Assembly (NCBI GenBank): GCA_965240325.2
Contig: OZ251227.1
Coordinates: 2,852,001 to 2,916,000 of the forward strand
DNA length: 64,000 nucleotides
From: Rebecca billardiae RCC1528
Lineage: Eukaryota > Protista > Haptophyta
Direction: 5' to 3'
The translations under genes were made by a program, and so were the position numbers. The stretch's first letter is position 1. Every line of letters starts with the position of its first letter. Positions 3,001-56,876 of the stretch are shown here, one piece after another. Under the pieces are notes generated by a model, which worked only from the letters and a program-made list of their open reading frames with translations, was not told the origin of the DNA and ran no database searches.

Positions 3001-6000
3001 CGAGCTGGGGCGCGGAGGGCGGCGCCGCGGTGCGCGTCGCGCTCAACGGCCGCCAGTTCGCGCCCGCCGCCGCCGCCGACGCCGGCTCCTTCACCTTTGT
3101 CGGGCTGCACGCGCCCGAGATCGTATCTGCCGCGTTCAACTCGGAGGCGACCGCGCTGATCGTGCAGTTCGACGGCCAGCCGACCAACCGCGGCGGGATG
3201 GTGGGCTCGGGGCCGTGCGCGCGCGTGCTCGACGACGCGACGGTCGCGACGATCCGCGGCAGCTTCAGCGCCGAGCCCTCGTGCTACTGGGCCGACGACA
3301 GCACGCTGATCGCCGAGCTCAACTACCTGACGGCGATGGGCCCGGGCTCGAGCGTGGCGCTGCGCGAGAACACGATCTGGCCCAAGGCGTTTGGCGGCAG
3401 CTGCCCGAACGAGGTGTGCGCGAGCTCGAGCGCGACGATCGACGCGGACTTCCCGTGCATCGGCTCGTGCCCCACGCCCGTCGCCGCGCTCAACGGGCCC
3501 ACCCAGATCTCGTCGTGCCCGGGCGAGGTGCTCGTCCTTGACGCGAGCGGCTCGACTGGCGGCGGCATCAAGGACATCACGTACACGTGGCGCGTCGACC
3601 CGAGCGTCTCCGACTTCGCCGCGCAGATCAACGCGCGGCTGGCGGACACGACGGCGTACCCGCCCACGACGTCGGTGCTCACGATCGACGGGCTCGAGGG
3701 CTCGAACTTCGTCTTCCTGCTCCGCGTCTCGTCCTTTGTCGGCCGCACGTCCGCGCTCAAGCGCTGGGCGGTCACGCGCGCGGGCGGCGCCACGCCCTCG
3801 CTCTCGATCGATGGGCCGTTCGAGCTGCTCGCGCGGCCGTCGTCGAGCGTGCTGCTCAAGGGCGTGGCGGCGCTCGCCGACTGCTGGCCCGCCGACGACT
3901 CCGCGCAGATCGACTTCGCGTGGACGGTCACGTCGATCACGGACGCGGCGGGCGACGACGCGACCGCCGACACGTCGCTCGCGCTCGCCGAGCCGGAGCG
4001 CGCGTCGCTGCGCATCCCCGCCTTCTCGCTCGCGCCGTCGCGCACGTACACGCTGGCGCTCTCGGCGGCGATGGCCGCGGACCCGAGCTCGGCGACGAGC
4101 GCGTCCGTCCGCCTCGTCGTCGTCGCGCAGCCGCTGCAGGTGATCATCTCGGGCGGCGACCGCCGCGTGAGCACCACGGCCGATCTCGAGATTGACGCGT
4201 CCGCCTCGTACGACCCCAACGTGCCCGACGGCGACAGCGCCGGGCTCGACCCGGAGCTCTCGTTCGCGTGGTCGGTGGCGCGGCGGGTGAACACGACGTA
4301 CGGCACGCCCGCCGCCTTCGACGCGAGCGTCGCCGTCGACGGCCCGGTGCTCGCCGTGCCCGAGGCGGTGCAGCTCGCGGAGGGCAACTACACGATCCGC
4401 CTCACGCTCTCAAAGCCGGGGCTGTCCGACGCGAGCGCGTCCGTGGTGCTCGAGGTGGTGAACGGCGCGATCCCGGTGGTCTCGTTCGCGCCGCTCACCG
4501 CGCTCAAGTACAACCCCACCTGGTCGCTGCCCACGCAGCGCGTCTCGCTCTCCACCAGCCTCGACGCCGTCTCGGTCGCGCGCGAGGCGGCGGGTCTGGA
4601 CGCGTACTCCTACGAGTGGAGCGCGCGCGTGTCGGTCGCGGGCGAGCTCTCGGACGCGGGCCTCGACCTCGCGGACGCGGCGGGCGTGACGACGACGGGC
4701 GCGGACGGTCCGTCGCTCGCGTTCCGCTCGGGCGTGCTCACCGCGGGCGCGCTCTACGTCTTCGAGCTCCAGGTCTTTGGCGGCTCGCAGCCCGCGTTCG
4801 CGTCGGTGAGCGTGCAGATGAACCGACCGCCGTACGGCGGCGACCTGACGGTCTCGCCGATGAGCGGCGGCGTCGAGCTGGAGACCAAGTTCAAGCTGCG
4901 CGCGAACGGGTGGACGGACGACCCGGAGGACTCGCCGATCGAGTACGGCTACTCGTACCTGCCGAGCGGCGCCGACGCCGCGCAGTCGCTCGGCGAGCGC
5001 GTCAAGGCCAAGTCGTCCAACGCGTTCCTGCCCGCGGGCAACCTGACCGTGACCGTCTCGGTCTTCGACTACTACGGCGCGTCCGCGCGCGCGTCCGTGG
5101 CGGGCGTGCTCGTCGACGAGGCGCCGGCGCTGGACTGCGACGCGGTGGCCGCGGCGCTCGACGCGGCCAACACGGCGGCCGGCACCGGCTCGGGCGCCGC
5201 GGCGATGCAGCTGCTCAAATCGCTCTCGGGCGCGGCGGGCAAGGGCGCGGGTGACGCGCTGGCGTGCGACGCGAGCCAGCTGAGCCGACGGCGGCGCCGG
5301 CTGGACGAGGCCAACGCGACGGGCGCGGACGCGAGCACGTCGGTGTCGACGCTGATGCTGAGCACCGCGAGCAGCGTCGCCTCCTCCGCCGTCTCCACCT
5401 CCGACTCGACGCAGCAGACCGCCTCCGTCGTCGCGTCGATCGCGAGCGGCTCGGGCTGCGCGCTCGACGACAGCGGGCAGACGCTCGCCATCACGACGGT
5501 CGCCAACGCCGCGAGCGCCGCGTCGAGCGACGGCTCGTCGGACTCGTTCGCGGGCGACGTGGTGGGCACGATCAGCTGCGTGCTGCAGTCCGCCGACGCG
5601 TCCGCCAGCCGGCGCCGCCGCCTCGCCGAGGCGGGCAACGAGACCAACTGCACCGCGTCGGCGCTCGCGGCCGTGAACGCCGCGACCAAGCAGGCGGCGG
5701 CCGCGGTCGCGTCGACGATGACGGCGGGCGGCGTGCCCGGCGAGCCGGCGACGGAGGCGTCGACGGCCAAGGTGAACGTGACGGCCGTCGTCGCGACGAA
5801 GGGCGCGCTCGCCAACGGCACGATCGCCGGCCCCGGCGGGCAGGGCGCGCTCGACATCTCGACGGCCGCGCTCGCGAACGCGACGGGCGGCGGCGTCGTG
5901 CTGCACTCGTCCATCATCGCCGACAACATCTACGCCGATCTCGGCTGCCCCGAGCCGAACGGCACGAACGCGTCGGCGGGCTCGGCGGCGGACGCGCGGC

Positions 6001-8037
6001 GCCGCGCGCGCCGCCGGCTGCAGAGCGGCTCCTCCTCCACCGGCGCGCTGCAGACCGGCGTCTTCTCCGTCTCGCTCCTGGGCACGGACGGCGTCGCGCT
6101 GCAGGTGCAGAGCCTCGACGAGCCGATCGTGGTCGCCATCCCGATCACCGCGGGCTCGGAGCGCGTGGTGGGCGCGTCGGGGAGCTGCGCCGAGTTCGAC
6201 AACTGCAACGCGGCGAAGGGGCGCGGCGCGTGCGCGGCCGACGGCGCGTGCGACTGCGTCTCGCCGTACACGGGACCGTCGTGCGCGGAGGAGGCGCAGT
6301 GCTTCTACTGGGACGAGACGCTGGCGGAGTGGAGCCAGGACGGGTGCACGCGCATCGCGCCGCCCGACGGCGCCGACCCGAGCCTGCTGTACTGCAGCTG
6401 CACGCACCTCACCGACTTTGGCGGCATCGCCGTCGACGTGCCCACCTCGACCGACGACATCGCCGAGGACGCCTCCGCCATCCAGGTGAACACCTTCTCT
6501 GCGGACGACGCGAAGAGCGCGCTGAGCGCGGAGGGGCTCGCCGAGCGCGTGCAGAACAACCCGTACATCTTCGGGCTGGTGCTCGGCATGGCGGGCGGCT
6601 GCTTCCTCTCGCTGTGCCTCTTCTGCTACAAGGACCACACCGACACGGAGGCGAAGCGCGCCAAGCGCGCCGCCGCCGAGGAGGCCAAGCGCAAGAAGCA
6701 GGAGGCGCGCGCGCAGGCGCTCGAGGCGCGGCTCGACAAGTTCGACGACGCGCTCGCCGAGCAGACGGAGAAGGCGGCGCTGGCGATCCAGGCGGTGATG
6801 CGCGGCAAGATGGCGCGGAAGGAGGTGAAGGAGACGCAGATGCTCTTCAAGCGCGGCAACCGGAGCACGGACCACTCGTTCACGCGGCTGTACCGGCTGA
6901 TGGTCGACGCGCTCGAGACGGAGCACACCGTGCTCGGCCTCTGGTTTGGCGACCCGGAGACGGCCAAGCGCGCCGAGCTGTGCCAGTCGTTCTGGAACGT
7001 GTGCATGCTCGGCCTCGTGATCGAGTGCATGCTGTACAACACGGCGCCCTCGTCGGACGACGGCTCGTCGGGCGCGGCGATCTCGTTCAACCTCGTGCAG
7101 ATGGTCATCTTCGCCTCGATCACCGCCGGCCTCTCGCTGCCGGCGCTCTTCATCTTCAAGACGATCTTCCTCCTCGGGTACGGCCGCGACGTGCCGCTCG
7201 CGCGCCGCGTCTTCGTCGCGATCATCGACCCGAACGAGGCGGAGGACAAGATGATGGTGCGGCACCGCGCGAAGGGCACGCCGCCGCCCACGCCGCAGCA
7301 GGCGGCGATGACGACGGGCGTCGCGTCGATCTTCGCCAAGCGCTCCGCGGACGTGCCCATCTCGCCCGAGCCCGCGGCGCGGCTCGGCGGCGAGGGCGCG
7401 CGCGCGACATCGGGCCGAGGCGGGAAGCGGCTTGGATCGAACGTGCCCATCGAGCCCGAGCAGCCGGGCGACGAGACGGCGCGCTCGACGTCGAGCCAGA
7501 AGCGATTCGAGTCGAGCGTCACGCCCAGGGCGACGCCCGCGGCGGAGAGTCGGCTGTGCGCCGGGCTGGCGCCGGCCGGGCTGGAGGGCGGGCCGGGCGC
7601 GGCGAGCATGCCGCCGTCGCCCGCCCAGCCCTCGCCGCCGCCGAGGCAGCCCAGCCCGTCGCCGATCTGGCCCATGCGCCGCGCCGCGCAGCGGCCTCGA
7701 GTCGCGCAGATCGAGCCATCGCCGCCGCACTCGCCCGCGCCCGCGAGCCGGCGGCCTGCGTCGCTGGTCTCGCCGCCGTCCTCGCCGCCGCCGCCGCAGC
7801 CCGCCCCGGCGGCCGCGCCGCCGCAGCTGCCGCTGGACCCGCCGCGCATCGGCTCCGCCGACACGGAGACCAGCTCGACCGCGTCCGGCCGGCGCGCGCT
7901 CTCCTCGCGCGTCGCCCTGCCGCCGCCTCCGCGCAAGAACAGCCGCACAGGCGCGCCCGCGGCCGCCGCGATGCCGCCGCGCCCGCGCATGCCGCCGCGC
8001 CCGCCGCAGGCGCGCAAGGGCTCGACGGGCGTGCGCA

Positions 8038-49170: not shown

Positions 49171-50442
49171 TTCGCAGGGAGGCTTTCTCCCCGGCCTCCT
49201 CGTCGGGCCGAAGCAGAAAGAAATATCCTCGGATTCCTCGCGCAATAATTAATTTGGATCGCGTCTGAGAGCAGGCGGCGGCGGCGGCGGCGGCATCGGC
49301 AGGGGTTCGCGAGATGGTGGGCGTGAACGCCGCCTGGCCGTGTTGTTCCTGACGGGCGGATGGGCGCGGCCAGGCGGTAGCGTACAACTGAAACAAGCTG
49401 TCTGAAGCAGCACTCTTGCCAGCCTGTGTGGGCATCGGGCCAGAGAGCCTGCTTCCCCGCGAGGCCGCAAGGCATGAGGCATCGCCAGCTCCGGGAGCCG
49501 TGAGGCCACCCGTCCCAGCCCCCTACGTCAAGGTCCCTGGTATTGAAAAGTACCCGCAGCTATTCGTTACCAGCCCATTTCATAGTCACTGAGCTCATGA
49601 CCGTCCATGGACGGTCATGAGCGCGCTGAGCCGAAGACGGGCTCACGGGCTTTCTGGGATGGGTGGCCGAGTGCCGCCGTCGGGATCCGCGGAGTATCGC
49701 AGCTTGCTCCATGAGGCTGAATGAGGCGCCAATTCAGTAGGCAATTCCGTCGCATCTGGCTGGAGACCAGGCTGGTCAGCAAGCCACGCTCTGTCGCGAG
49801 GGTTCGGCTGGTAGTGGTACTACGTCTCGTGGCGTTACACCAGCTCCCGAGACAGACGGTATAATGATAATCCCGACGGGACTCGGGAGTTGCCCTGATG
49901 ACGGCAAGGCTGGTGTAGCTGTCGTGTGGATTGAATAGGCGGGAGCTGCTGCGACGCGCAAGGCCGTGCGTTCGATTGAACGCCACGGGTTGATGTGGCG
50001 AGGGCGCGCCACGCCCACCCACGCTCTGACCTCGAGCGCGGTGGGTGTGCCGACAGGCGGTTCGTGAATCGTGTCGGAGTCTCGGCGAGCGGGCGCGGCG
50101 GGGGCAGTCCGGGAACGCGTCCACTAATACCGGACTCTGGCAAAATTTGGCGGGAGGGCAGGTCAGTATCTCGGCTCGGGGGTGGTACCGCGAGATGAAT
50201 AGATGATGATACAGGGAGGGGGTACTCCGGTACTTTCCTCAGAGAGTTCTCGCACCTGATTGGCTGAGCCCAGTTCGGGGCGCATACTCCACGGCCGCCG
50301 ATTAGACTTGCCCCGTTCCCGCGCTTTTGAGCCCGAACAGACGGGTCCTGTGCGTTTGCGCGGGAAAGTTGCACCAGGGCTGGCGACGCTTCCCGAGCGG
50401 ACTAAGCGGAGGAGGGAGGACACTCGTGAACTCCTCGGCGGC

Positions 50443-51468
50443 ATGCGCAGCGACAGCGAGAGCGCGACGACGACGGCGGCGACGACGAGCGCGGGGGACG
50501 GCGACGAGCCTCAGTCCTGCGCGATGTCCCCGGTCTCCCCCCGACACCCTGACGACGTCGCCTCGGCGCCGCCACACCCAACAACGCCTGCGACGCCCAT
50601 CGCGCGCCCCCCTTCGGCGGCGAGCGGCGACGCATCGCGCGCGGGCGTCGAGGAGGCGGGGCAGCACGCGTTCTCGACGCCGAAGGAGAAGAGGCAGAAG
50701 CAGCTCCCGGCCGACCACTTCGAGCGCGTCGCCATGTGGCACACCGTCGAGCTGCGCAAAATCTCGGGCAACGCCGCGCCTTCGAAGAAGAACCTCAAGA
50801 ACTGGCTCCGAAAGAACCCGGCATGCGAGATCTACGCCGGCCAGGACCTGGGGCAGAAGCGGGCGCTGCGCGAGCGGCGGCGCGAGCGGGCGCGCGAGGT
50901 GCAGGCGAAGGAGAACCTCCAGACCATCGCCCAGGCGCTCTGCACCGGCGGCGAGCGCGCGCGTGGCGGCGCGCGCATGCAGCTGCCCTCGGCCGCCGCC
51001 GCGCATGAGCACCGGCACTTCCCGTTCATGCGCAGCCGCAGCCCCTCGCCCGAGCGCACGCGGTGCGACGGCGCGTGGGGAAGCTGCGACTCGCCCTCAT
51101 CCGCGTACGAGCCCGTCGCCGTGGCCAGCACCGCGTGCGGCGAGGACGGCCTGCTCGTCGACATCTGCTTTGAGCCCACGCACGCCGACAGCGGGCGTGA
51201 CGCCGGCAGCGCCTCGCTCATCGCGCCCTTCTCGCCGAGCCACTTCTTCGCGGACGACGAGATCGAGCAGCTCGCAGGCCTCGGCCCGCTCCCCTCGCCA
51301 GCGGCCGCCGCCGCGCAGATCGACGGCGCATGCGACGCGCGCGAGCTCGGCGTCGACAGCGGCGACGAATGGTGGGAGACGTGCGCTGCCAAGCCGATGG
51401 CGCTCGACTCACCGTGCGGCGTGACGGAGATGGACGAGCACGTGCTCTTCGGCTCGGCGCTCGCGTGA
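50443..51468 (+). CDS. BRK-domain protein, otherwise low complexity
   Basis: ERVAMWHTVELRKISGNAAPSKKNLKNWLRKNP resembles the BRK motif of CHD7/BRM-type proteins. Confidence 0.65.
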   Translation: MRSDSESATTTAATTSAGDGDEPQSCAMSPVSPRHPDDVASAPPHPTTPATPIARPPSAASGDASRAGVEEAGQHAFSTPKEKRQKQLPADHFERVAMWHTVELRKISGNAAPSKKNLKNWLRKNPACEIYAGQDLGQKRALRERRRERAREVQAKENLQTIAQALCTGGERARGGARMQLPSAAAAHEHRHFPFMRSRSPSPERTRCDGAWGSCDSPSSAYEPVAVASTACGEDGLLVDICFEPTHADSGRDAGSASLIAPFSPSHFFADDEIEQLAGLGPLPSPAAAAAQIDGACDARELGVDSGDEWWETCAAKPMALDSPCGVTEMDEHVLFGSALA

Positions 51469-52328: not shown

Positions 52329-53663
52329 ATGGCGACAGGCACGTCGACCCGCACGCGCGGCGATCTGGTGTGCACGACGTCTGTGACCGACCTGGGCAAG
52401 CGCATGCCCATCGCTACGGGCATCTGCTTTCTCGACCACATGGTCGACCAGCTCGTCTCCCACGGCCAGCTCGGCATCTCTGTGCAGGTGTCGCTCGGTG
52501 GCAAGCCGTTCTCCGCGGACGCAGACTATGCTGTCCTCGCAGCGGGCAAGGCCACGAGTCCAGGCGATCCATCCGTCCTCATCAGCGAGCGGCCGCATGA
52601 CGAAGCGATCTTCGAGCTCGTTGGCGCCTCACTCGGCGCCGCGCTGGCCGAGATGGCGCGCGAAGTGCAGGGCACCGGCTCCGCGCCGCCCGCGGCGCCG
52701 TCTGCCGATGCGATGCGATTCTGTGCGCCGCTGGACGAGGCAGTGAGCGAGGCGGTGGTCTCCCTCGGCGGCGAAGGCTTCGCGTTCGCGCTCGCGCCGT
52801 ACGGAACCATCCCCCCGGGCGGGCGCACCTGGATCGGCACGTACCGCACGGCCCTCACCGAGCCGCTCTGGCGCGCGCTGGGCGCGGAGCTCGGCGGCCG
52901 CGTCGAGCTGCGCAAGCTGCGCGGCGCCAACGCGCACCATATCGTCGAGGCGAGCTTCAAGGCGTTCGCGCGCGCGTTCCGCGCGCACATCGATGTGCTC
53001 AGCGGCGCGTGGGACGCGCGCTCCGCCGCGCTGCTGCCCGAGCCCAGCGCGGCCGCGCGGCGCGCGAGCCACTCGCGCTCGACCAAGGAAACAGCCATCG
53101 AGGTCGAGGTGGCGCTCGACGGCGCCGGCGGCGGCGGCGCGGTGAGCACGGGGATCCGCACGCTCGACGGGCTGGTGGAGGCGCTGCGCGAGGCATCGAC
53201 GGCCTCCGTCAGCGTGCGCTGCGCGGGAGACCTCCACATCGACGACCACCACTCCATCGAGGACGTCGGCATCGCCCTCGGCCAGTGCCTCGGCGCAGCG
53301 CTCGGCGACAAGGCCGGCTGCAACCGGATGGGCTGCGCCGCCGCGGCTGAGGGCGGCGCGCAGGTCGAAGTGGTGGTCGACCTGTCGAACAGGCCGCACT
53401 ACGAGTCTGACCTCGTGCTCGACGCGGAGTACACGGGTGACATGGCCAGCGAGATGGTGGAGCACTTCTTCGACTCGCTCGCGACGAGCGCTCGCTCGAC
53501 GGTGCACGTGCGGCAGCTGGCGCGCGGCCGGGGACCGTCTGCGTGCGCGGAGCTGGCCACGGCCACGGCGCGCGCGCTCGGTCTCGCGCTGCGCCAGTGC
53601 GCCGCTATTGACCCCCGCCGCGCCGGCATGACGGCGAGCTCGAAGGGCACGCTCAGCAAGTGA
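52329..53663 (+). CDS. HIS3: Imidazoleglycerol-phosphate dehydratase, internally duplicated (two IGPD units)
   Basis: TGICFLDHM, PLDEA, NAHHIVEASFKAF in unit 1; RSTKET, GDLHIDDHHSIED, DLSNRP, EHFF, SSKG in unit 2. Confidence 0.92.
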   Translation: MATGTSTRTRGDLVCTTSVTDLGKRMPIATGICFLDHMVDQLVSHGQLGISVQVSLGGKPFSADADYAVLAAGKATSPGDPSVLISERPHDEAIFELVGASLGAALAEMAREVQGTGSAPPAAPSADAMRFCAPLDEAVSEAVVSLGGEGFAFALAPYGTIPPGGRTWIGTYRTALTEPLWRALGAELGGRVELRKLRGANAHHIVEASFKAFARAFRAHIDVLSGAWDARSAALLPEPSAAARRASHSRSTKETAIEVEVALDGAGGGGAVSTGIRTLDGLVEALREASTASVSVRCAGDLHIDDHHSIEDVGIALGQCLGAALGDKAGCNRMGCAAAAEGGAQVEVVVDLSNRPHYESDLVLDAEYTGDMASEMVEHFFDSLATSARSTVHVRQLARGRGPSACAELATATARALGLALRQCAAIDPRRAGMTASSKGTLSK

Positions 53664-54454: not shown

Positions 54455-55138
54455 TCACACAACCGACTGCTTGGTGGTGCCTGTCCCGGGGACCTTGGTG
54501 CCCTGCTCCTCCTCGATCTTGCGCGCCTCCTCCTTGGCGCGCTTCAGCTCTGCGAGCGAGCGACCGTGCAGCGCTTCGCGGTAGTAGAGCAGCCAGTTGG
54601 TCACCTGCGCGCGGCGCGTCATGTTCGGCGTGAGGCCCTCGAGCTTGTACCCCGTGAATCCATGCGGGCGGAGCTGCTCCTTGAGCTGCTGCTTGTACGC
54701 CATGGGGATCGACCGGTGGATCGCCTGGTTGGCGCGCATCACCGGCTCGTCCACATCCTTGGTGTATGTGCGAGTCACGCCGATCAGGTCCGGAGGCGAG
54801 GGGTACTTCTCGCGCCACTTGGCAAAGGCCCTGCTCGCGTCCCAGCTGCCGTCTTTGCGTTGGACATAGCCCAGACAGCGCCAAATAAGCTCGTTCGTCT
54901 CCTCGTCCGTCGTCTCGAGCTTCACGATGCGCACGAGCCGCTCGTTTGCCAGCTCGCTGATGTCGACGTGCTCGCCGACGATGTAGTCGTCATCAGCGGC
55001 ACCGCTTGCCGCGGCGCACATTCGCACGGGTGCGGCAGAGCTCGCGCGCGCCATAGCGCGAGGCGACCACACGCGCGAGGGAGCGTGAAGCCCTCCGAGC
55101 GCGACCACCATCAGCGCAGAGGCGCCGGCCGCCATCAT
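54455..55138 (-). CDS. DUF1823-family protein (cyanobacterial/plastid type) with bipartite-like presequence
   Basis: NELIWRCLGY, WREKYPSPPDLIG, KQQLKEQL, GYKLEGLTPNMTRRA..NWLL. Confidence 0.8.
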   Translation of the reverse strand: MMAAGASALMVVALGGLHAPSRVWSPRAMARASSAAPVRMCAAASGAADDDYIVGEHVDISELANERLVRIVKLETTDEETNELIWRCLGYVQRKDGSWDASRAFAKWREKYPSPPDLIGVTRTYTKDVDEPVMRANQAIHRSIPMAYKQQLKEQLRPHGFTGYKLEGLTPNMTRRAQVTNWLLYYREALHGRSLAELKRAKEEARKIEEEQGTKVPGTGTTKQSVV

Positions 55139-55262: not shown

Positions 55263-56876
55263 ATGCACGTGGCGAAGGCGCCCAAGCTGGCCCAGTCGGC
55301 CTTTCAGATGGGCCGCGAGACGTACCGCGTGCCGATGAGCCTTCACGCCGCGAACCGCGCCAAGGTGGCTGCGCTGATCGTCGCGGCGACGAGCAAGGAC
55401 GCCGCGCGCAGCGTGGCGCGCGACGTTGTGCTGCTCAAGGGCGGCGAGCAGCCCGAGCGGTACGACACGGACAACGAGCCGCTTTTCCGGCAGGAGTCCA
55501 GCTTCCACTACCTCTTCGGCGTCTCCGAAGCGGGCTGCCTCGGCGCGCTCGAGCTGCCCAACGGCCGCTCGACCCTCTTCGTGCCGCGGCTCGCGGGCAA
55601 CGCGCAGTACGAGATCTTCTGCGGCAAGTTTCCCACGCCGGACGAGTTCCGCTCCAAGTACGAGGTCGACGAGGTCAAGTACGTCGACGAGCTCGACGGA
55701 TGGCTCGACGACCGCCTCGGCGCGGACGGGAGCGCGCGCGTGCACGTGCTGGACGGGGTCAACTCCGACTCGGGCGCGCGCCCCGTGCTCGTGCCGACGC
55801 TCGGCGGCGCGGCCGCGGCGCGCGCCGAGCGCGGGGTGCTGTACAACGTGCTCGCCGAGGCGCGCGTGCGCAAGAGCGAGGCGGAGATCGAGCTCATGCG
55901 CTACACGTACCACATCGCCTCCGCGGCGCACGTCGCCGCGCTGCGCGTCGTCCGCGCCGGCCGCATGGAGTACGAGGTCGAGGCGGCGTTCCTGCACGAG
56001 GGGTACGCGCGCGGTGGCTGCCGGCTGCCCGCGTACACGTGCATCTGCGCGTCCGGCCCGAACGCGGCGGTGCTGCACTACGGCCACGCGGGCGCGCCCA
56101 ACGCGCGCGAGCTGCGCGGCGGCGAGCTGCTCCTGCTCGACATGGGCGTCGAGTACCACTGCTACGCGTCCGACATCACCAACACCGTGCCGGTCTCGGG
56201 CGTGTACACGGCGGAGCAGGCGGCGGTGTACGACGCGGTGCTCGCGGCGCAGCGCGCCGTGGTGGGCGCCATCCGGCCGGGCGTGCCGTGGACCGAGATG
56301 CACCGCCTCGCCGAGCGCACGATCCTCGAGGGGCTGCGCGCCGCCGGGCTGCTCAGCGGCGACGTCGCCGACATGATCGACGCGGACGTGGGCGCGGTCT
56401 TCATGCCGCACGGGCTGGGGCACCTGATCGGCGTGGACACGCACGACGTGGGCGGGTACCTGCCCGGCTGCCCGCCGCGCTCGGACCGCCCCGGCCTCAG
56501 CCGGCTGCGCACCGCGCGCGTGCTCGAGCCGGGCATGGTGATCACGGTCGAGCCCGGCTGCTACTTCATCGACGCGCTGCTGGACGGCGCGCTCGCTGAC
56601 CCGGCGCGCGCGCGCTTCCTCGTGCGCGAGCGGGTCGAGGCGTTCCGCGGGTTTGGCGGCGTGCGCATCGAGGACGGCGTGGTGGTCACCGAGGGCGGCG
56701 CCGAGAGCCTCGCCGCGTGCCCGCGCACCCGCGCCGAGGTCGAGGCTGTGCTCGCGGGCGGCGAGTGGCCGCCCGCCAAGGACGACCTGCCCGAGCTCCG
56801 CCGTTCGTGGTGCCGGCTGGGCGCGCACGGCCAGGGGCTGCAGCCCATCGCCATGCCCGGCGCGGCGGCGGCGTAG
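55263..56876 (+). CDS. PEPD: Xaa-Pro dipeptidase (prolidase, M24B)
   Basis: FRQES.FHYLFGV, YTCICASG.NAAVLHYGHAGAPN, DMG.EY.CYASDIT, MPHGLGH, TVEPGCYF, GGVRIED. Confidence 0.95.
   Translation: MHVAKAPKLAQSAFQMGRETYRVPMSLHAANRAKVAALIVAATSKDAARSVARDVVLLKGGEQPERYDTDNEPLFRQESSFHYLFGVSEAGCLGALELPNGRSTLFVPRLAGNAQYEIFCGKFPTPDEFRSKYEVDEVKYVDELDGWLDDRLGADGSARVHVLDGVNSDSGARPVLVPTLGGAAAARAERGVLYNVLAEARVRKSEAEIELMRYTYHIASAAHVAALRVVRAGRMEYEVEAAFLHEGYARGGCRLPAYTCICASGPNAAVLHYGHAGAPNARELRGGELLLLDMGVEYHCYASDITNTVPVSGVYTAEQAAVYDAVLAAQRAVVGAIRPGVPWTEMHRLAERTILEGLRAAGLLSGDVADMIDADVGAVFMPHGLGHLIGVDTHDVGGYLPGCPPRSDRPGLSRLRTARVLEPGMVITVEPGCYFIDALLDGALADPARARFLVRERVEAFRGFGGVRIEDGVVVTEGGAESLAACPRTRAEVEAVLAGGEWPPAKDDLPELRRSWCRLGAHGQGLQPIAMPGAAAA

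Follow-up and report, generated by a model that had tools for sequence, protein, structure and literature searches.

A putative imidazoleglycerol-phosphate dehydratase with active-site residues partitioned between two fused units in the haptophyte Rebecca billardiae and other algae

The canonical monofunctional imidazoleglycerol-phosphate dehydratase (IGPD; termed HisB, HISN5, or His3; PDB 4MU0, 2F1D, 7OJ5, and 6EZM) is a Mn-dependent homo-24-mer. It is a textbook case of such an assembly, with active sites built across subunit interfaces, and it is a validated herbicide target. Here we describe a gene from Rebecca billardiae RCC1528, located in a 64-kb stretch of contig OZ251227.1 (hereafter, the window), that encodes two IGPD units in one polypeptide, with each functional residue of the canonical enzyme retained in one unit and lost from the other.

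In the published active-site map (Bisson 2015, PMC4509728), each IGPD site sits among three chains, A, A', and C. One metal, Mn1, is bound by His47, His169, Glu173, and His74, and the other, Mn2, by His73, Glu77, His145, and His170 (Arabidopsis IGPD2 numbering). Chain A supplies Gln51, His55, and Lys177, and chain C supplies Arg99; in the closed form the phosphate is bound additionally by Arg121, Ser199, and Lys201 of the C-loop, and an IGPD with this loop deleted is inactive. A water molecule on Mn2 is held by Asp108 and Glu77. In Medicago HISN5, which is described in its own numbering, one subunit contributes the equivalents of His73, His145, and Glu77, its neighbor contributes that of His170, and a third subunit contributes both arginines (PMC10978614).

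The R. billardiae gene is a single uninterrupted open reading frame (ORF) on the forward strand at window positions 52329..53663, which starts with ATG and runs for 444 codons, encoding 444 residues, up to a stop codon. An in-frame stop lies 20 codons upstream of the ATG, and the GC content at third codon positions is 0.90. No further IGPD-like frame is present in the 64-kb window, where this is the sole IGPD locus. The Pfam profile for IGPD (PF00475), with a cut-off of 27 bits, gives a score of 204.6 bits in three matching stretches that span both units. Residues 237-444 can be aligned over their full length with Arabidopsis IGPD2 (PDB 4mu0/4mu1; E of about 1e-39), and a profile derived from 96 canonical sequences, each of about 195 residues, matched the protein once more, at residues 22-54 and 131-223; therefore, the protein consists of two IGPD units in tandem. 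Its parts are as follows.

52329..53663, + strand: whole gene, tandem IGPD-IGPD with stop codon (ORF, PF00475, and PDB matches).
52329..53003, + strand: unit 1, residues 1-225; IGPD fold with the alpha1/alpha4 half-site kept, a variable insert at residues 57-90, and no C-loop (profile alignment and predicted structure).
53004..53060, + strand: linker, residues 226-244, located where the unit 1 C-loop would be; predicted local distance difference test score (pLDDT) of about 60-83 (AlphaFold).
53061..53660, + strand: unit 2, residues 245-444; IGPD fold with the alpha2/alpha3 half-site, both arginines, and the C-loop (profile alignment and predicted structure).

Each unit was aligned to the hidden Markov model (HMM) of canonical IGPD, and the functional residues were read off by position. 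The retained motifs and residues are listed below; unless noted otherwise, the assignments come from alignment and conservation.

52431 (start), + strand: unit 1 LDHM motif, L35-M38.
52437..52463, + strand: unit 1 H37, Q41, and H45, equivalent to His47 (Mn1 ligand) and to Gln51 and His55 (phosphate site); invariant in 104 sequences.
52728..52739, + strand: unit 1 P134-L135-D136-E137, equivalent to Pro106 through Glu109, with Asp108 in the proton relay on Mn2.
52929..52961, + strand: unit 1 NAHHIVE..FK, with N201, H203, H204, E207, and K211 equivalent to Asn167, His169, His170, Glu173, and Lys177.
53076..53093, + strand: unit 2 R250-S-T-K-E254-T255 (RxTxET), with E254 equivalent to Glu21, the proposed acid-base catalyst.
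53241..53264, + strand: unit 2 DDHHSIED (D305-D-H307-H308-S-I-E311-D312), carrying His73, His74, and Glu77.
53325..53327, + strand: unit 2 R333 (in NRM), equivalent to Arg99, which binds phosphate from the third subunit in canonical IGPD.
53391..53393, + strand: unit 2 R355 (in NRP), equivalent to Arg121, which binds phosphate, from the third subunit.
53460 (start), + strand: unit 2 EHFF motif, E378-F381.
53463..53465, + strand: unit 2 H379, equivalent to His145, an Mn2 ligand.
53616..53648, + strand: unit 2 C-loop, with R430 and R431 (Arg193 region) and S437-S438-K439-G440 (Ser199 and Lys201).

Not a single functional position is shared by the two units, and none is missing from both. Each unit carries four of the Mn ligands, and neither has all eight; the full set (His47, His73, His74, Glu77, His145, His169, His170, and Glu173) occurs once per polypeptide. 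The same is true of the nine substrate-binding and catalytic residues (Glu21, Gln51, His55, Arg99, Asp108, Arg121, Lys177, Ser199, and Lys201): Gln51, His55, Asp108, and Lys177 are found in unit 1 and the other five in unit 2. At its lost positions, unit 1 has Glu and Ala in place of His73 and His74, Asp in place of Arg99, Glu in place of Arg121, and Pro in place of His145, and it ends in the linker at the location of the C-loop. Unit 2 has Gly at the His47 and Asp108 positions, Ala at those of both Gln51 and His55, Ala, Glu, and Thr at those of His169, His170, and Glu173, and Arg at that of Lys177. The first-pass annotation of this stretch had described a 444-residue protein of two IGPD units with reciprocal losses of motifs. 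The ORF, the PF00475 match, and the double profile match bear out the protein, the HMM alignment of both units bears out the losses, and every motif position that it gave is exact.

The partition follows the published chains. Unit 1 holds exactly the chain A set, and unit 2 holds the chain A' set together with the third-subunit set and the C-loop; all 13 residues with a published chain assignment lie on the expected side (13/13), an outcome with odds of roughly 1 in 4000 by our own arithmetic if residues were assigned to the units at random. The structural premise of the first-pass annotation, that the site lies between subunits with its ligands split between them, agrees with the Bisson map (PMC4509728) and with the Medicago account (PMC10978614). 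Its further proposal of a built-in heterodimer, in which each unit supplies one face of a single site, is supported by the match of the partition to the published chains, with the qualification that the linked pair alone does not make up a complete site. Since these arginines act from a third subunit and are kept only in unit 2, at least one further unit 2 from another chain is required.

We consider it probable that this protein is a working imidazoleglycerol-phosphate dehydratase (EC 4.2.1.19), and that it arose when, long ago, IGPD was duplicated in tandem and fused and the two units then decayed reciprocally. In the role of chain A, unit 1 would give His47, His169, and Glu173 to Mn1 and His170 to Mn2, and would additionally provide Asp108 and the Gln51/His55/Lys177 phosphate site. 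Unit 2, in the role of chain A', would give His73, Glu77, and His145 to Mn2 and His74 to Mn1, and would supply Glu21; it would double as the third subunit (Arg99 and Arg121) and bear the sole C-loop (Ser199 and Lys201). One face from each unit would then contribute to a single di-Mn site of the normal kind, whereas the reciprocal interface would be dead, leaving one complete di-Mn site per polypeptide instead of two, with half of the ancestral sites lost. Arg99 and Arg121 would be contributed by the unit 2 of a different chain, and the C-loop by some unit 2; with the arginines supplied in this way, a higher oligomer would be needed for catalysis.

The same partition is widespread. We define the tandem IGPD-IGPD subfamily as proteins in which a unit 1 with His47, His169, His170, and Glu173 and no C-loop is followed by a unit 2 with His73, His74, Glu77, His145, Arg99, Arg121, and the C-loop; the R. 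billardiae protein has all of these features. Searching with the full-length protein gave 444 relatives with lengths of 340-670 residues, and residue tables were compiled over 115 and then 172 fused proteins, counting in each column only the sequences aligned there. The partition was found in 171 of the 172; the single outlier (P0370) is degenerate at all positions. In unit 1, His47, Gln51, and His55 are present in 146/147 aligned sequences, His169, His170, Glu173, and Lys177 in 168-169/169, and Asp108 in 146/160. In unit 2, His73, His74, Glu77, Arg99, Arg121, and His145 are each present in 171/172 sequences, Lys201 in 169/169 aligned, and Glu21 in 144/145 aligned. Across four algal phyla, the eight metal ligands and nine substrate-binding and catalytic residues are kept in 91-100% of aligned sequences. 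Fixed as it is in 171 of 172 fused homologs, the complementary pattern is far beyond chance, and the reciprocal retention is under strong purifying selection across phyla. The residues at lost-ligand positions vary (at the His47 position of unit 2, A in 38, E in 35, R in 27, and G in 25 sequences; at the His145 position of unit 1, P in 43, T in 28, and V in 25), and therefore those half-sites appear to be truly dead. No intermediate with a full ligand set in both units was found among the 172 fused proteins (0/172). At the His145 position, 171/172 fused proteins have His in unit 2, as does plant IGPD, and 90/107 of the mostly bacterial single-unit IGPDs collected have Glu.

This pattern bears on whether the protein still catalyzes the IGPD reaction. 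Half of the sites have been remodeled, and the unit 1 insert (residues 57-90) varies between lineages, as might be expected if the fused protein had acquired a new function on another substrate. However, all known residues that bind the imidazole, hydroxyls, and phosphate of imidazoleglycerol phosphate are kept in the live half-sites, and no conserved replacement has appeared at the lost residues, so that we give a new function scant credence.

The fused protein might instead be a catalytically dead scaffold or regulator, with a canonical IGPD elsewhere in the genome doing the chemistry. Such a pseudoenzyme would account for the absence of a full ligand set from either unit and for the failure to reach the HisB equivalog cut-offs (see below), and canonical single-unit IGPDs do exist in some algae of the MMETSP collection (e.g., P0474). 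On the other side, the retention of each metal ligand and each substrate-binding or catalytic residue once, while the dead positions drift, looks like the signature of selection for catalysis. Moreover, the only IGPD of Ostreococcus lucimarinus found in our look-ups is the unit 2 half of a fused gene, and according to a review on diatoms Thalassiosira pseudonana has one IGPD gene, be it fused or canonical (PMC3901274). With the 64-kb window as the part of the R. billardiae genome covered, we regard a pseudoenzyme as highly improbable.

Two sets of observations weigh against a working fused enzyme with the proposed division of labor. First, all of the NCBIfam HisB equivalog models (NF002108, NF002109, NF002111, and others) score under their cut-offs: the best score is 233.7 against 328, and the nearest approach to a cut-off is 221.6 against 231. 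These models derive from bacterial single-unit HisB. Second, in the text copy of PMC4509728 a figure legend reads "Glu21A and Glu173A", which places both residues on one chain; this conflicts with the retention of Glu21 in unit 2 only and of Glu173 in unit 1 only. Either the prime was dropped in the text copy of the legend or the assignment of Glu21 is wrong. No conserved acidic residue is found at the Glu21 position of unit 1. Asp108 is kept only in unit 1 and its partner Glu77 only in unit 2. In the AlphaFold secondary structure, Glu21 and Asp108 occupy corresponding hairpin turns, one in each half-domain, and their retention is therefore self-consistent under the internal pseudo-twofold axis of the subunit: in the model, Glu21 would belong to the alpha2/alpha3 face, and Asp108 would belong to the alpha1/alpha4 face.

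The AlphaFold2 model of the 444-residue protein, computed on a 104-sequence alignment, has a mean pLDDT of 92.1 and a predicted template-modeling score (pTM) of 0.92. A pTM of this size for a two-unit chain argues for a confident prediction in which the two units are packed rigidly in a fixed mutual orientation. The regions of low confidence are the unit 1 insert (residues 70-90), a loop at about residues 120-130, the linker (residues 226-244), and the last few residues. Foldseek searches of the PDB returned only single-unit IGPDs, with template-modeling scores (TM) of 0.93-0.96 normalized to the solved chain and root-mean-square deviations (rmsd) of 1.2-1.6 A; at about 40% identity, these alignments were evidently placed on unit 2. 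In unit 1, the order of strands and helices, read from the model alone, is the same as in IGPD, with pLDDT above 90. The IGPD fold, a four-helix bundle between two four-stranded sheets, is present. The ESM Atlas model of a chlorophyte homolog, a prediction made independently, shows the same two-unit arrangement (TM of 0.88 and rmsd of 2.7 A over 422 residues).

These models also bear on where the live site is formed. The enzyme could be active with its site between chains, where unit 1 of one polypeptide meets unit 2 of another; the linked pair would then straddle the dead interface or some other contact of the shell, and the description as a built-in heterodimer would be true for stoichiometry only. 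Arg99 and Arg121 already must come from the unit 2 of another chain, and a linker of roughly 19 residues could bridge several neighbor relations in a shell of 24 positions. However, AlphaFold and ESMFold each give a single tight, confident intrachain packing, and a conserved ligand-bearing interface is the simplest source of a strong packing signal. We therefore see an interchain site, the main rival reading, as unlikely and favor a live site within the chain, between unit 1 and unit 2 of the same polypeptide.

For the assembly of such chains, our best guess from geometric reasoning is that 12 of them would take up all 24 places in the octahedral shell, in a tetrahedrally symmetric arrangement with 12 live sites. 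Among the subgroups of the octahedral group, the tetrahedral group alone has index 2. Each kind of unit would form homotypic trimers, and unlike units would meet across the lost fourfold and twofold operations. In a tetrahedral 12-mer of this kind, the third subunit would be a unit 2, in line with the residues that are retained. That several dominant groups of marine phytoplankton have the fused protein as their sole IGPD, assembled as a tetrahedral 12-mer with 12 live di-Mn sites, is a tentative proposal, which we hold to be possible but doubtful.

All of this presupposes one gene, and at first glance the annotation of relatives suggests otherwise. In O. lucimarinus, the GenBank/RefSeq model (XP_001420174; 220 residues) covers only unit 2, beginning at an internal Met, and the public entry appears as an IGPD without His47, His170, and Glu173. 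Prokaryote-style gene callers split relatives as well: on a picoeukaryote contig (L001) whose unit 1 resembles suspected green-algal clusters, they cut the gene into "IGPD" proteins of 314 and 210 residues. It could thus be argued that the fused protein is an artefact of gene modeling or assembly, with two adjacent IGPD genes read as one. However, the frame is open from end to end both in the R. billardiae window and in O. lucimarinus, where the finished chromosome has a continuous ORF for both units (L005 2056..3663, CP000590.1) and the open frame upstream of the XP_001420174 start encodes unit 1. The split on the picoeukaryote contig corresponds to a 120-nt GT..AG intron (5894..6013) inside the linker, which holds an in-frame stop and across which the reading frame is preserved. 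Furthermore, complete fused transcripts are present in MMETSP and EukProt assemblies of Corethron hystrix, Yihiella, and Biecheleria. The probability of an artefact is, in our estimation, negligible.

Several candidates for other arrangements were rejected. A stand-alone unit 2 (P0129; 210 residues, 23 contigs) results from faulty gene calling, as unit 1 directly precedes it in the same frame and the lone stop is intronic. Three longer proteins with the two units at the C-terminus (P0274, P0280, and P0281; 810-1206 residues) probably result from the merging of neighboring gene models; they contain no other histidine-pathway domain, and P0281 has nucleoporin FG repeats. A search with unit 1 against 1.84 billion cluster representatives gave 135 clusters at E < 1e-10 and no convincing case of a free unit 1; the shorter matches either extend into the first part of unit 2 or stop at points that probably mark an intron or the end of a contig.

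A survey of the phylogenetic distribution of the fusion, which the first-pass annotation had suggested, found it in haptophytes (Diacronema lutheri and Prymnesium parvum), dinoflagellates (Effrenium voratum, Yihiella yeosuensis, and Biecheleria cincta), diatoms (C. hystrix), and mamiellophyte green algae (O. lucimarinus and Bathycoccus prasinos). The ESM Atlas clusters of fused length are mostly labeled Bacillariophyta and Chlorophyta. The fused form is the standard IGPD of several large algal groups and is not peculiar to the R. billardiae genome. The diatom review cited above gives two IGPD ORFs, be they fused or canonical, for Phaeodactylum tricornutum (PMC3901274).

In a maximum-likelihood tree, all unit 1 sequences form one clade and all unit 2 sequences another, each with a support of 100 in the Shimodaira-Hasegawa-like approximate likelihood ratio test (SH-aLRT), and the subclades of the two match one another. 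The R. billardiae units fall within their respective clades, beside pavlovophyte sequences (support 99). Two clades with matching subclades indicate a single ancient fusion, followed by co-descent or by transfer of the entire fused gene. The backbone that relates unit 1, unit 2, and the canonical IGPDs has a support of 13; the canonical sequences nearest to either unit include cyanobacteria. The dinoflagellates are split, with Effrenium and Yihiella together and Biecheleria nested in haptophyte-like sequences, identically for both units, which hints that the whole fused gene may have moved between algal lineages. The N-termini differ as well: the haptophyte proteins begin at the first strand of unit 1 (window positions 52329..52440) and have no signal or transit peptide, whereas the diatom and green-algal versions have 40-110 additional N-terminal residues (homologs P0002, P0003, and P0018 were compared). 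This difference may reflect a cytosolic enzyme in haptophytes and a plastid enzyme elsewhere.

Neighboring genes in the window include an adjacent ORF at 54455..55138 on the reverse strand, which encodes a DUF1823 protein (Pfam E = 1.5e-36), and a gene of the Xaa-Pro aminopeptidase/prolidase type (Peptidase_M24 and AMP_N) in one open frame at 55263..56876 on the forward strand. A low-complexity ORF at 50260..51468 on the forward strand has a weak match to the BRK domain (E = 4.7e-6), and its frame and gene model are uncertain.

The fused proteins are already present in public databases, where they are automatically named IGPD. Nevertheless, the tandem split-site IGPD has apparently been unrecognized so far: we found no description of it in the literature on IGPD duplication, fusion, algae, or active-site residues, and no tandem IGPD is mentioned in the accessible parts of a review of fusion and elongation of histidine genes (PMC7284861) and of a survey of 12,710 IGPD sequences (PMC10978614). 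The public annotation can be corrected, as the O. lucimarinus "IGPD" is the second half of the protein, which alone would look dead. The system records subfunctionalization at the level of the half-active site, resembling intragenic complementation frozen into a gene, and it bears on which chain supplies Glu21 and Asp108, on whether 24 sites are needed, and on how an octahedral shell could accommodate subunits of two colors. An IGPD structurally unlike that of plants in diatoms, haptophytes, dinoflagellates, and mamiellophyte green algae is relevant to the selectivity of IGPD-directed herbicides and algicides. If the 12-mer proposal is true, the protein would represent a natural reduction of symmetry through tandem fusion and reciprocal active-site decay, and its dead interfaces and missing C-loops would offer inhibitor-binding surfaces unlike those of plant IGPD.

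Two other events in the history of histidine biosynthesis are among the closest to this one. The bifunctional HisB of gamma-proteobacteria and other bacteria (histidinol-phosphatase plus IGPD; NF003937) is likewise an IGPD fusion, as covered in the IGPD survey (PMC10978614); however, it links two distinct enzymes and contains an intact IGPD, whereas the algal fusion joins IGPD to IGPD with complementary decay. The elongation of the IGPD half-domain gene, as presented in the review (PMC7284861), was also a duplication and fusion and is the source of the two DxHHxxE-type motifs of the canonical subunit; that event predates the last universal common ancestor and made the subunit of about 200 residues, whereas the algal event, which is specific to eukaryotes, repeated the process on the entire subunit. 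With the canonical enzyme, the fused form shares the Pfam family, the fold (TM of 0.93-0.96 for unit 2), the eight metal ligands, the substrate-binding and catalytic residues, and presumably the chemistry. It differs in how these are distributed: each canonical subunit of about 200 residues carries both half-sites, giving 24 sites per 24 subunits, whereas each unit of the fused protein carries one half-site, giving at most one site per two units, with Arg99, Arg121, Glu21, and the C-loop confined to unit 2. All solved structures are of single-unit enzymes. Shared-site enzymes paired with a degenerate paralog are known from trypanosomatids, namely deoxyhypusine synthase and AdoMetDC/prozyme, and aspartate transcarbamoylase hybrids are the classic example of intragenic complementation. 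In these cases, too, active sites lie at interfaces and two defective partners rebuild a subset of working sites. However, the partners there are separate polypeptides or laboratory mutants, whereas in algae a single gene encodes both complementary halves, and this fusion has become fixed in several phyla.

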